A stretch of DNA of 64,000 nt. Origin: Macrostomum lignano. Taxonomy: Eukaryota. The stretch is from the NCBI GenBank assembly GCA_002269645.1, contig NIVC01002921.1, positions 62,001 to 126,000 on the forward strand, read 5' to 3'. Shown one piece after another: positions 45,740 through 49,556 of this stretch (position 1 is its first letter; every line of letters begins with the position of its first letter). The notes beneath the pieces were generated by a model. It was not told the origin of the DNA, made no database searches, and saw nothing but the letters and a program-made list of their open reading frames with translations. The position numbers and the translations under genes were made by a program.

Positions 45740-45984
45740 TCAGCCAACGATCCAGACATATCCAGTCTCGTTGGCGAAGGCGGTGGCGAAGCTGCTGAGG
45801 CGGCAGAGGCCGCTGCTGCTGTTGAAGCGATAGGAGGAGCAGCTGGCAGTCCGGGCGCAGGAGGCGGTGCACTTCATCCGGCTCTGCGTCTTGACGTCCC
45901 AGCCCAGGGAGCCGGCGAATGCAGCGGTGGTGACCAGCGGAGGAGCGGCAGAGGCGGCGAACTTGCGAAAATTTATCTGGGATC
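45740..45984 (-). CDS. Orphan PAN/apple-like terminal exon (copy A) of the WSC-PAN family; its own WSC exon is absent
   Basis: Intact ttgcag acceptor and open frame ..SQINFRKF..MKCTASCARTASCSSYRFNSSSGLCRL..VWIVG*. The upstream intron is cut at ~46043 by a 21-mer array. Confidence 0.65.
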
Positions 45985-46043
45985 CTGCAACCGGAGAATG
46001 ATGAGGCTGAACATCGCCGAGTTGAATACCATTTAACATACCA

Positions 46044-46520
46044 CTCTCCTTCTCATGCATCTCATTCTCCTTCTCATGCATCTCATTCTCCTTCTCATGC
46101 ATCTCACTCTCCTTCTCATGAATCTCATTCTCCTTCTCATGCATCTCACTCTCCTTCTCATGCATCTCATTCTCCTTCTCATGCATCTCACTCTCCTTCT
46201 CATGCATCTCATTCTCCTTCTCATGCATCTCACTCTCCTTCTCATGCATCTCATTCTCCTTCTCATGCATCTCACTCTCCTTCTCATGAATCTCATTCTC
46301 CTTCTCATGCATCTCACTCTCCTTCTCATGCATCTCAGTCTCCTTCTCATGAATCTCATTCTCCTTCTCATGCATCTCACTCTCCTTCTCATGCATCTCA
46401 GTCTCCTTCTCATGAATCTCACTCTCCTTCTCATGCATCTCATTCTCCTTCTCATTCATCTCATTCTCCTTCTCATTCACCTCATTCACCTCACTCTCCT
46501 TCTCATGCATCTCTCCCTCA
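46044..46520. repeat. 21-bp minisatellite (ctcatgcatctcattctcctt)n; shorter copy at 44030-44330
   Basis: Direct tandem repeats at the duplication junction. Confidence 0.9.
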
Positions 46521-47277
46521 CACATCTATCTGATAAGCCTCCTTCTCATGCATTTCGCTACCAAAAAGCCTATTAAATTTAACTTCTAGCGAGGTAATTG
46601 CTCAGTAGAGGTGAAACTGCCAACCGCTGGAATTAAAAATTAGTTAAACAAAGACGCAGATCGTTATGCTGTGAGAAAGCCACTTTCTATGCACCTGTTG
46701 CGCAAATATTAACAACACCGTTAATTTAGCTTGGGAACCAAGGCAAAGGCCCAATAATGAGTTAATATGCATATGAAACTCGGTACAGGGCTGCAGGTTC
46801 AGCTCTCTGCATGGCCGCTGCCCGTCCAACACTGTTGCGCATAAACAAAATGGCTTTTTTGCAACTCTTTCAAACCACCTTCAGGCTTTCTCTAATTCTT
46901 TAAAAGGCACTGCAGTCAGTGCTGGTTTCTTTTCATAAGCTGCATTAGCTGAATATGACTAAGTGCTAATGTGCTGCGTTGCGCTTTGCATGCCGAGTTT
47001 TTCTGCCCTCGAGACTTTTTTGGCTTTGATTTTGCTTTAATAAATTATGCCTGTAGCTACGAGCGCAAGTGAATGGGGACCAGCAGTTTTCTTGCAGCTT
47101 TCTTCTCAGTCTGACAGCAGTATGCGCCAGCAAAATTTGAATTCTTTTTAGAGATGTCAATAGCACTCAAAGTAGCAGCCGACTAGCTCACAGCCAAAGA
47201 CCACATCTAGCTCATAGGATGGGCGGTTATAGACCCACACCCTGCATGAGAGGCCACAGGCAACAAACAAACAAACA

Positions 47278-48605
47278 AACTAACTAACTAACTAACTAAC
47301 TAACTAACTAACTAACTAAATAACTAAATAACTAACTAACTAACTAACTAACTAACTAACTAACTAACCAACTAACTAACTAACTAACTAACTAACTAAC
47401 TAACTAACTAACTAACTAACTAACTAACTAACTAACTAACTAACTAACTAACTAACTAACTAACTAACTAACTAAATAAATAAATAACTGACTAACTAGC
47501 TAACTAACTAACTAACTAACTAACTAACTAACTAACTAACTAACTAACTAACTAACTAACTAACTAACTAACTAACTAACTAACTAACTAACTAACTAAC
47601 TAACTAACTAACTAACTAACTAACTAACTAACTAACTAACTAACTAACTAACTAACCAACTAACTAACTAACTAACTAACTAACTAACTAACTAACTAAC
47701 TAACTAACTAACTAACTAACTAACTAACTAACTAACTAACTAACTAACTAACTAACTAACTAACTAACTAACTAACTAACTAACTAACTAACTAACTAAC
47801 TAACTAACTAACTAACTAACTAACTAACTAACTAACTAACTAACTAACTAACTAACTAACTAACTAACTAACTAACTAACTAACTAACTAACTAACTAAC
47901 TAACTAACTAACTAACTAACTAACTAACTAACTAACTAACTAACTAACTAACTAACTAACTAACTAACTAACTAACTAACTAACTAACTAAATAACCAAC
48001 TAACTAGCTAACTCACTAACTTACTAACCAACTAACGAACTAACTAACTAACTAACTAACTAACTAACTAACTAACTAACTAACTAACTAACTAACTAAC
48101 TAACTAACTAACTAACTAAATAACCAACTAACTAGCTAACTCACTAACTAACCAACTAACTAACTAACTTACTAACTAACTTACTTACTAACTAACTAAC
48201 TAACTAACTAACTAACTAACTAACTAACTAACTAACTAACTAACTAACTAACTAACTAACTAACTAACTAACTAACTAACTAACTAACTAACTAACTAAC
48301 TAACTAACTAACTAACTAACTAACTAACTAACTAACTAACTAACTAACTAACTAACCAACTAACTAACTAACTAACTAACTAACTAACTAACTAACTAAC
48401 TAACTAACTAACTAACTAACTAACTAACTAACTAACTAACTAACTAACTAACTAACTAACTAACTAACTAACTAACTAACTAACTAACTAACTAACTAAC
48501 TAACTAACTAACTAACTAACTAACTAACTAACTAACTAACTAACTAACTAACTAACTAACTAACTAACTAACTAACTAATTAACTAAATAACTAAATAAC
48601 TAAAT
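47278..48605. repeat. (AACT)n microsatellite, copy 2 (expanded)
   Basis: Direct reading. Confidence 0.95.
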
Positions 48606-48783
48606 GACAATCAAATAAAAAATATACTTTTCTGCGATTGACAATGGACAATTTGGATAATTTTGACACTGTTAGTAGTGTCCAGTCTATTTTATTTTCA
48701 CTTTGCTTTGAATTCGCTTTAATCAGTGCATTTTATTACCTCCTGTGAGTGTTTCTTTTTAACAAATGATCAAGACTTTAGGC

Positions 48784-49556
48784 TCAATTGGGGATAAAAC
48801 TTCCGCCAACGATCCAGACATATCCAGTCTCGTTGGCGAAGGCGGTGGCGAAGCTGCTGAGGCGGCAGAGGCCGCTGCTGCTGTTGAAGCGATAGGAGGA
48901 GCAGCTGGCAGTCCGGGCGCAGAAGGCGGCGCACTGCATCCGGCTCTGCGTCTTGACGTCCCAGCCCAGGGAGCCGGCGAATGCAGCGGTGGTGACCAGC
49001 GGAGGAGCGGCAGAGGCGGCGAACTTGCGAAAATTGATCGGTGATCCTGAAACCGGAGAATGATGAGGTTGGACATCGCCGAGTTGAATACCATTTAACA
49101 TACCAAAGCACTCGGTAGCGTTCGCTCACTCGTTGGCTGAAAATTCTCGTAGATGGAGTTTCTGAACCCTCCGCCGCAGATCTGGCCAGCATTCCCAGAG
49201 CAGCTGGTGCTGCACTCAGAGTCTGGCGCGGGACCCGAGGAGCCGTAGCTGGAGCCGCACATGCAGTGCCTGAAATGCTGCAGTCCGAAGTACCGGAAGC
49301 CGCCGTAGACGCAGATCTCGCTGCACAGCTGCACCGTCATGTCGGCTCTTTTTACAGCCGCCTGGGCCATGTAGGTGACGCTGAACGGGCCGAGCTGGGC
49401 GATGCCAACGAGGCCCCGCAAGTCTCTGCTGGGAGCAGCTCGGTCTCTGAAGCAGCCGACGTAGACCGGAGTGGCTCTGCGCTGGCACAGCGACCCGGAG
49501 ACCAGCAGAGCGGCCACCGCAACACTGAGCAATGCTGTGCGACTGCACTGTTGCAT
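48784..49556 (-). CDS. Secreted WSC + PAN/apple-like protein (copy B); exons 49556-49130, 49046-48784
   Basis: Signal peptide and WSC motif (YVGCF.D..RDL..MTVQLCSEIC..GFRYFGLQ...CMCG....SEC..SCSGN..QICGG..RNSIY). An 83-nt phase-1 GT-AG intron leads to a PAN-like C-x3-C-x5-C..Y.F....C exon. Confidence 0.85.

Follow-up and report, generated by a model that had tools for sequence, protein, structure and literature searches.

Mutually exclusive use of tandemly duplicated terminal exons is known from the Drosophila genes pip and PGRP-LC (PMC9013439); in exons of this type the dual use is RNA-proven, most copies are ancient and conserved, and competing RNA structures accompany a number of them. In the flatworm Macrostomum lignano, spliced-leader (SL) trans-splicing and operons occur (PMC8629364), and the trans-acceptors are enriched for the motif [T/C]TNCAG (PMC5730564, PMC8629364). 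The WSC and PAN domains with which we are concerned have relatives in the PDB: the WSC part matches those of Kremen-1 (5fws) and of a fungal WSC protein (7pz2) with E-values of 4e-5 to 7e-5; the PAN relative is the apple domain of Toxoplasma MIC4 (4a5v; E 5e-4). Compared with these, the flatworm proteins described here are small (~220 aa), two-domain and predicted to be secreted, and they belong to a free-living animal. In a protein database search the relatives of the WSC-PAN proteins were M. lignano proteins, and we found no literature on WSC-domain proteins of Macrostomum or on Mlig006881.

The window—the whole 64,000-nucleotide stretch of M. lignano DNA that was analysed—contains a tandem array of WSC-PAN paralogues in the order F, E, D (a pseudogene), C, B, A, all of those with coordinates given here being on the minus strand. 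From its sequence, the family to which gene B belongs is predicted to consist of small secreted WSC-PAN proteins encoded by two-exon genes. Exon 1 of gene B (49130..49556) begins with an ATG at 49556 and, by translation and Pfam, codes for a signal peptide and the WSC domain; its donor is ACGA/GTGAGC, and the final exon base at 49130 opens a split codon (phase 1). The single phase 1 intron (49047..49129; GTGAGC...TTTCAG) is 83 nt long, and the coding part of exon 2 (48784..49046; acceptor TTTCAG/GA) specifies the PAN domain. The translated product has 229 aa arranged as signal peptide, WSC and PAN, with the WSC domain at residues 61-129 (PF01822, 56.4 bits, 3.5e-15; gathering cut-off 27.8 bits) and a PAN_1 match of 30.8 bits (PF00024; gathering cut-off 21.4 bits). 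Gene B has lost the ancestral stop through a TGA to GGA change (48804) and gained a 6-residue extension (GGSFIPN); its current stop at 48784-48786 lies within or adjoins a 9-nt insertion. Three poly(A) hexamers follow on the same strand (48691..48742), with first bases at 48737 (AATAAA), 48723 (ATTAAA) and 48696 (AATAAA), which is 47, 61 and 88 nt beyond the stop.

Paralogues C (51145..51890) and E (54639..55403) are intact WSC-PAN genes of two exons each, their introns being 83 and 111 nt long, respectively. Paralogue D (53211..53863), which also has an 83-nt intron, is a pseudogene that has neither a start nor a signal peptide and carries two in-frame stops in its WSC exon; it is a mosaic, with a B-like 5′ end and a 3′ end resembling D′ of a paralogous block. 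That block is recognized by a 9.4-kb stretch of 97.1% identity to contig NIVC01002389.1 of Mlig_3_7, and its DNA (L001) runs to the equivalent of window position 50146; it contains extra copies G, H and I, one copy with an in-frame stop, and one WSC/PAN deletion fusion. Exchange among array members is evident in clustered differences, in a tract where B equals D, in the mosaic D, and in a copy number unlike that of L001. Rearrangement of the array is frequent. Family introns span 83-178 nt, extending to ~340 nt in one distant paralogue that is transcript-supported and has the same two-exon plan as gene B; no orphan PAN exon lies within 10 kb on either side of it.

Exon A (45740..45984, minus strand) is a PAN exon lying 3 kb downstream of gene B. 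It has the acceptor TTGCAG/GA, shares phase 1 and an open frame with exon 2 of gene B, ends in a TGA stop at 45740-45742, and when searched alone scores 31.0 bits against PAN_1, for which the cut-off is 21.4. A preliminary description of this DNA had given the exon this position, acceptor, phase, frame and stop, and its coordinates were reproduced. The residue differences it listed also recur exactly, with SQIN in A for SPIN in B, MKCTASC for MQCAAFC, and a stop in place of the extension of B; all four Cys are retained, with the spacing C-x3-C-x5-C-x11-C in both copies, which fits PAN. Inside the exon the two copies differ at 45742, 45861, 45868, 45874, 45974, 45978 and 45980. There is no WSC exon between 43000 and 48784, so exon A is truly an orphan. 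Three poly(A) hexamers follow its stop, as they do in gene B (45638..45689, minus strand; 45684, 45670 and 45643). A possible decoy splice site, a new TTCAG 22 nt upstream of the exon A acceptor, was given little weight, the likeliest branch point (CTCAT) being downstream of it; Rfam has no match within the window.

Homology between A and B stops at 46043/46044 (equivalent to 49105/49106), in agreement with the earlier placement of a break inside the WSC-PAN intron at about 46043. Because it ends there, exon A retains 59 of the 83 intron bases (45985..46043, minus strand)—the 3′ portion, ending in TTGCAG, with A-private substitutions at 46007 and 46010—and has no donor. At the junction, which borders a 21-nt minisatellite, there is a 2-nt microhomology, 'ca'. 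Each duplicated unit is ordered as 21-nt minisatellite, 796-nt unique spacer, (CTAA)n, 3′UTR, PAN exon and 59 nt of intron. Copy 1 (44024-46043) has 14.7 minisatellite units (44024..44316), somewhere inside which the left breakpoint of the duplication falls, then the spacer (44284..45079) and ~121 units of (CTAA)n (45065..45550). Copy 2 (46044-49105) has 21.3 minisatellite units (46045..46491) starting at the junction, a spacer (46481..47276) that is 100% identical to that of copy 1, and ~335 units of (CTAA)n (47262..48603), which read as (UUAG)n on the transcribed strand. The head-to-tail repeat ends inside a gene and copy A has neither promoter nor 5′ exon, which is the configuration of a partial tandem gene duplicate.

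Since the 796 nt of spacer together with 140 nt of distal 3′UTR contain no differences between the copies (936 nt), we judge the duplication to be very young. The 95% upper bound on flank divergence is ~0.33% (903 nt of flank), versus ~2.9% between the two paralogous blocks. The differences number 11 substitutions and a single 9-nt indel, every one of them confined to 324 nt around the exon, among 1,259 comparable nt, a clustering with a simulated P of about 5e-6 for the substitutions. Four substitutions are packed into 15 nt (45974-45988), where B is the same as D and A is the same as L001 copy I, and three others are packed into 14 nt (45861-45874). Five substitutions are private to A: none of them occurs in B, D, L001 copy I or B′, the equivalent of B in the paralogous block. 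We infer that the clustered differences are best explained by gene conversion from paralogues. Comparison of the copies demonstrates such conversion for the tract that B shares with D (45974-45988), and for that tract alone, because none of the readable copies supplies a donor for the five A-private changes; the A-private cluster would reflect either conversion from an unseen paralogue or independent mutation. With flanks less than 0.33% diverged, the PAN variants A and B already differ by four residues and the stop-loss tail.

The open state of exon A carries no evidential weight. Simulations put the chance of its being intact at 70-87%. With five to 11 substitutions placed at random, 74-87% of the runs preserve both the acceptor AG and the open frame, and 51-74% preserve these together with all four Cys; given the youth of the duplication, an intact exon is what the null predicts. 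For A versus B, dN/dS is 0.64 and does not differ from neutrality (p = 0.64), a value that comes from only six changes, and with B′ of the paralogous block as outgroup the derived amino acid changes split 2:2 between A and B. Selective maintenance of both PAN copies is not indicated by this dN/dS, by intactness at the level of chance, or by the single PAN exon in P0004, which is an ab initio protein model. In that model of the paralogous block—protein, not DNA—the single B′ PAN exon is followed directly by the downstream gene, and the window's own model from the same annotation series, P0005, includes exon A; the duplication is thus apparently absent from the 97%-identical block, as far as these models reflect it. 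No other contigs were found with exact matches to the window ORFs (A plus minisatellite, and the B exons) or to P0001, P0002, P0004 or P0005, and a search with the neighbouring SAM-domain ORF gave no matches. Caution is warranted with the public ab initio models, which chain the whole array, A included, into 'proteins' of 1,074 and 2,673 residues.

These observations suggest that exon A is probably a newborn orphan exon, the product of a recent tandem duplication, and that it is silent or gives a trace isoform at most. A single and very recent tandem duplication of ~2-3 kb in the M. lignano WSC-PAN array copied the segment from the minisatellite downstream of gene B to 59 nt into its sole intron, taking in the PAN exon, the 3′UTR and the poly(A) signals and leaving behind the donor, the WSC exon and the promoter. 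The exon and its close flanks are the sole part of the unit with paralogues elsewhere in the array, and short tracts would subsequently have been swapped there by gene conversion, giving rise to the SQIN/SPIN and MKCTASC/MQCAAFC differences while the remainder of the unit stayed identical; gene B has in addition lost its ancestral stop and acquired its tail. Transcripts of gene B would splice the 83-nt intron to their own acceptor and be cleaved at their own poly(A) signals, leaving exon A silent or nearly so, its intact state reflecting youth. As a counterpoint to silence, the acceptor of exon A is as good as that of B and the exon has poly(A) signals of its own, and low-level use is conceivable.

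The preliminary description went further, proposing that the donor of gene B could splice to either exon. Its account of the duplication stands, but this splicing, which the sequence permits, is disfavoured rather than refuted, and we regard it as unlikely. The donor at 49130 would join either to its own PAN exon or, after read-through of the poly(A) signals, to the acceptor at 45984, so that a single promoter and WSC exon would give rise to a pair of secreted proteins distinct in PAN domain and C-terminus. Exon A could serve in this way: its acceptor is a consensus TTGCAG in phase 1, its frame is open and closes with a stop, it matches PAN_1 as well as B does, and it has three poly(A) hexamers of its own. 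The fast evolution of the 5′ half of the PAN exon (dN/dS 0.7-1.1 between family paralogues, within-set pairs) may mean that diversity at the PAN domain is favoured. The required intron of 3,145 nt falls inside the species' range, and a length of 3.1 kb is unexceptional because M. lignano introns average 1.1-1.4 kb (PMC5730564); it is nevertheless far from the sizes seen in the family, and about half of it (~1.8 kb) would consist of (UUAG)n and minisatellite. Moreover, B has its own proximal acceptor, which comes 83 nt after the donor and is the first to be transcribed, the poly(A) hexamers after the B stop come 2.7 kb short of the A acceptor, exon A bears no selective signature, the A/B differences resemble conversion tracts and not the tuning of alternative exons, and the paralogous block apparently has no such duplication. 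No protein joining the WSC exon of B to the PAN exon of A was present in the searched collections, where A occurs in one model only, a chimera predicted ab initio; a query with the B-WSC/A-PAN chimera returned P0003 only, in a word-indexed search that also missed P0004 and P0005, both of which contain B exactly. That A and B are alternative terminal exons caught at birth, with the B donor using both and with partial tandem duplication and conversion from neighbours generating C-terminal diversity in a fast-evolving family of secreted proteins, is likewise improbable in our estimation; if true, it would offer a rare view of that process. Alternative last-exon use at this locus would be mechanically possible but is unsupported.

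Exon A might instead be reached by read-through from gene B, polycistronic units being common in M. lignano, its unpaired acceptor taking the spliced leader to give an SL-PAN(A) RNA that would be non-productive or non-coding. We see little likelihood in this, even though the sole known requirement for trans-splicing is an acceptor without an upstream cis donor, TTGCAG fits the trans-acceptor motif, and the repeat-adjusted gap from the poly(A) region of B to A is ~0.9 kb, near the 1 kb that PMC8629364 applied as its threshold for operons. The leader ends in ATG, and its union with exon A would read ATG GAT CCC AGA TAA and stop after four codons; the first in-frame ATG of A would yield a 45-residue peptide with no signal peptide; and cis-splicing from the upstream donor of B competes with trans-splicing at A. 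An error of assembly, in which an allele or a further copy contributed reads that were stitched together in tandem across the (CTAA)n and minisatellite arrays of a genome that has one PAN exon after B, has an equally slim chance of being correct. In its favour, the 796-nt spacers show 100% identity, arrays that are difficult for assemblers delimit the unit, the repeat-array lengths of the two copies differ ~3-fold, and M. lignano assemblies are redundant, with 180 Mb in blocks of at least 95% identity (PMC5730564). However, the sequence is gap-free, intron and minisatellite meet at 46043/46044 in a unique join with 2-nt microhomology, as is typical of a real breakpoint, and the five private substitutions, absent from every copy compared, indicate that A derives from distinct DNA. 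The UniProt model A0A1I8IQU1 also carries the A-private residues, although its public assembly may be the same as that of the window. The junction has in addition placed minisatellite, intron remnant and exon A in one 261-codon ORF (45740-46525, minus strand), unbroken from an ATG at 46525 across the junction to the stop of A, as though a chimeric gene had been made with an acidic (MHEKESE)n repeat fused to PAN. This we consider extremely improbable: several frames on each strand of the stop-free 21-nt repeat are open, so an ORF is expected by chance, there is no signal peptide, identifiable promoter or database match, and the PAN domain, which depends on disulfides, would be synthesized in the cytosol.

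The nascent-exon interpretation is the one we retain, and from its sequence exon A is most likely a silent or nearly silent relic. If silent, it would be the kind of by-product that a rearranging tandem array routinely leaves, and the A/B pair would present a clean, datable case of gene conversion restricted to that portion of a duplicate for which paralogues exist. If used, exon A would be among the youngest documented alternative terminal exons born by exon duplication, in a host animal with transgenesis available for testing, even though the alternative last-exon mechanism is itself already known from other animals.

Set against the known systems, A and B match the pip and PGRP-LC type (PMC9013439) in structure, being two homologous tandem exons with same-phase acceptors, their own stops and poly(A) signals, and one shared donor. 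They are unlike these exons in having flanks less than 0.33% diverged, in their apparent absence as a pair from the paralogous block and in bearing no mark of selection. With M. lignano SL genes (PMC8629364), exon A shares a [T/C]TNCAG acceptor located downstream of the poly(A) site of a same-strand gene; unlike them, it has no start codon for a secreted protein, and the SL ATG is out of frame. The best-fitting category is partial gene duplication in a tandem array whose members evolve in concert through unequal crossing-over and gene conversion. There, as at the exon A locus, breakpoints lie in intron and minisatellite, copy number varies between paralogous blocks, mosaics (D), fusions (L001 19199-19504) and pseudogenes accompany the intact genes, and differences are limited to the segment with paralogous donors. 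Nothing essential sets exon A apart from this category; its fragment is a complete, splice-competent terminal exon.

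Gene B, a two-exon WSC-PAN gene on the minus strand, starts with an ATG at 49556, and its first exon ends at a phase 1 donor at 49130 (ACGA/GTGAGC); an 83-nt intron lies between 49130 and 49046, where exon 2 begins after TTTCAG and continues to a stop at 48784. In the 229-residue product, a signal peptide is followed by WSC (56.4 bits against a profile cut-off of 27.8) and PAN_1 domains. Approximately 3 kb downstream on the same strand is the orphan PAN exon A, which extends from 45984, preceded by TTGCAG, to a TGA at 45740-45742; PAN_1 scores are 30.8 bits for B and 31.0 bits for A alone (cut-off 21.4), and there is no WSC exon in the interval separating A from B, nor any downstream of A. 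The coordinates given in a preliminary description were each reproduced on the minus strand, and the residue differences it listed between A and B (SQIN/SPIN, MKCTASC/MQCAAFC, and a stop versus GGSFIPN) are all present, as are the four cysteines. B is the only one of ten copies to have lost the TGA, which is now GGA (45742/48804), and it also has a 9-nt insertion that provides the new stop and hence the GGSFIPN tail (48784-48804).

The tandem duplication had been described as breaking within the WSC-PAN intron near 46043, and A/B homology does stop at 46043/46044 (equivalent to 49105/49106), so that A has neither a donor nor the first 24 nt of the intron. The repeated unit comprises, in order, a 21-nt minisatellite, a unique spacer, (CTAA)n, the 3'UTR, the PAN exon, and 59 nt of intron; copy 1 spans 44024-46043, with 121 CTAA and 14.7 minisatellite units, and copy 2 spans 46044-49105, with 335 and 21.3. 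At the junction, the intron remnant is joined to the minisatellite with 2 nt of microhomology. That the duplication is an assembly artefact is disfavoured by this junction, which is unique and gap-free, and by five substitutions private to A. Very long simple arrays—(CTAA)n of up to ~2.9 kb, plus 22-nt and 21/27-nt repeats—occupy the intergenic space of the gene array (40078-41015, 42462-43189, 45065-45550, 47262-48603, 56922-58000, and ~58672-61565), in line with the repeat-rich genome of Macrostomum lignano.

The WSC-PAN paralogues of this array are arranged on one strand as E (intact), D (a pseudogene), C (intact), and B, followed by A; copy F (62455-63029) is on the plus strand, opposite to the array, and its WSC exon appears frameshifted relative to its counterpart in L001, the paralogous block on contig NIVC01002389.1 of assembly Mlig_3_7. 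The segment 53549-63002 is 97.1% identical to L001, in keeping with the known occurrence of large duplicated blocks in the M. lignano genome (PMC5730564). Three extra copies (G, H, and I) are present in the paralogous block, one of whose copies has an in-frame stop; in the counterpart of C (L001 19199-19504), a ~420-nt deletion has created an in-frame fusion of the WSC exon with the final ~25 PAN codons. The D intron is replaced in L001 by an 855-nt stretch with no match in the window. D itself (53211-53863, minus strand) has no start or signal peptide, contains two in-frame stops in its WSC exon, and is a mosaic: from the WSC exon through the intron to the 5' PAN it resembles B (97%), and its 3' PAN and 3' flank resemble D' and I of L001.

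All copies share the two-exon plan and a phase 1 intron at one position, with intron lengths of 83, 83, 83, 111, 110, and 178 nt; a transcript-supported distant paralogue, P0067, keeps the plan with an intron of ~340 nt and has no extra exon within 10 kb on either side. The relatives are M. lignano proteins, and the species has at least ten clusters, 30-40% identical, of ~210-residue WSC-PAN proteins, on which nothing was found in the searchable literature. A stretch of ~80 nt that encodes CARTASCSSYRFNSSSGLCRLSSFATA, in the 3' half of the PAN exon, is nearly invariant in nucleotide sequence in all ten aligned copies, even those only 57% identical overall (45790-45870, 48850-48935, 51200-51285, 53260-53340, and 54690-54770, and also in the L001 PAN exons). 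The pS there is 0.04-0.11, versus 0.2-0.3 in the 5' half, which points to either a gene-conversion hot spot or nucleotide-level constraint.

The two spacer copies are identical across 796 nt and the distal 3'UTR copies across 140 nt, so that flank divergence between the A and B units is below ~0.33% (95% bound), versus ~2.9% between the paralogous blocks. All 11 substitutions and the sole 9-nt indel fall within 45687-46010, for which the chance with 11 random changes is 5e-6; apart from the 3'UTR change at 45687 and the indel, which lie just outside, this span corresponds to the portion of the unit with paralogues in the array. Four sites within 15 nt (45974-45988), including the -4 base of the acceptor, carry the states of D in B and those of L001 copy I in A, and three non-synonymous changes within 14 nt (45861-45874) are private to A. 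The pattern is most simply explained by a very recent duplication and, after it, short tracts of gene conversion. Two A-private intron substitutions, at 46007 and 46010, change GTCCAACC to GTTCAGCC and thereby introduce a TTCAG 22 nt before the A acceptor; its use would shift the frame, and the likeliest branch point (CTCAT) is downstream of it.

In P0004 (UPI0007A152E4), a public ab initio model from the paralogous block, the counterpart gene B' has a PAN domain reading RSQINF...MKCAAFC and then runs straight into the downstream gene. With B' as outgroup, two residues are derived in A (A>T and F>S) and two in B (Q>P and K>Q), together with the stop loss. P0005 (UniProt A0A1I8IQU1) belongs to the same annotation series, includes A, and matches the window at 100% identity over the segments that were compared; since P0004 has no second PAN exon while P0005 took in A, these ab initio models suggest that the duplication is probably specific to the window's block. 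The two models (~39300-55400, minus strand) chain E, D, C, B, A, and a Q-rich SAM-domain gene into "proteins" of 1,074 and 2,673 residues by splicing around every stop codon, and as such are annotation artefacts. The Q-rich gene, with its SAM-like region (LLTWLKAHRMHKYHDRLKKYSFDRLL), is the next gene downstream, likewise on the minus strand (39657-40166 and 43121-43465); a word-indexed protein search returned no relatives, although its sequence is part of both models.

The donor at 49130 had been proposed to splice either to B's own PAN exon or to A, which if joined to exon 1 of B would give a 223-residue protein. The dN/dS between A and B is 0.64 (two synonymous and four non-synonymous changes), no different from neutrality (p = 0.64); paralogue pairs of the family PAN exon give 0.7-1.1, with nearly all divergence in the 5' half. 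The intactness of A is uninformative, since simulated copies with 5-11 random substitutions retain acceptor and frame in 74-87% of cases, and the four cysteines as well in 51-74%. Poly(A) hexamers (AATAAA, ATTAAA, and AATAAA) lie 47, 61, and 88 nt past the B stop, and the same three follow A. Use of A would need the polymerase to run past B's signals and the spliceosome to bypass B's acceptor, which is just as good and lies 83 nt from the donor, for one 3,145 nt away, along a path that crosses ~1.8 kb of simple repeat. Such splicing is possible, given that M. lignano introns average 1.1-1.4 kb (PMC5730564) and that other animals use duplicated terminal exons alternatively (PMC9013439), yet it is not what would be expected by default. 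No protein uniting B's WSC exon with A was found in the searched collections, a search with blind spots, as it also missed P0004 and P0005.

A read-through RNA could alternatively receive a spliced leader at 45984, as trans-splicing affects 30-39% of M. lignano genes and the A acceptor matches the trans-acceptor motif [T/C]TNCAG (PMC5730564, PMC8629364). The final ATG of the leader would then read onto A as ATG GAT CCC AGA TAA, and the first in-frame ATG of A would give a 45-residue peptide with no signal peptide; a leader-bearing A RNA would be non-productive. A further product of the junction is a 261-codon ORF (45740-46525, minus strand) in which (MHEKESE)n, the intron remnant, and PAN A are in frame, but this is expected by chance because the 21-nt repeat has no stops and the minisatellite is open in other frames too, on both strands.

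The earlier observation is confirmed. The structural part of its interpretation is right; the functional part, in which one gene yields two alternative C-terminal domains, is allowed by the sequence yet unsupported. We favour, with some reserve, A as a nascent orphan exon within a gene-converting, copy-number-unstable array as the most likely reading, and regard its true use as an alternative last exon as improbable. On either reading, the phenomenon falls within known kinds.
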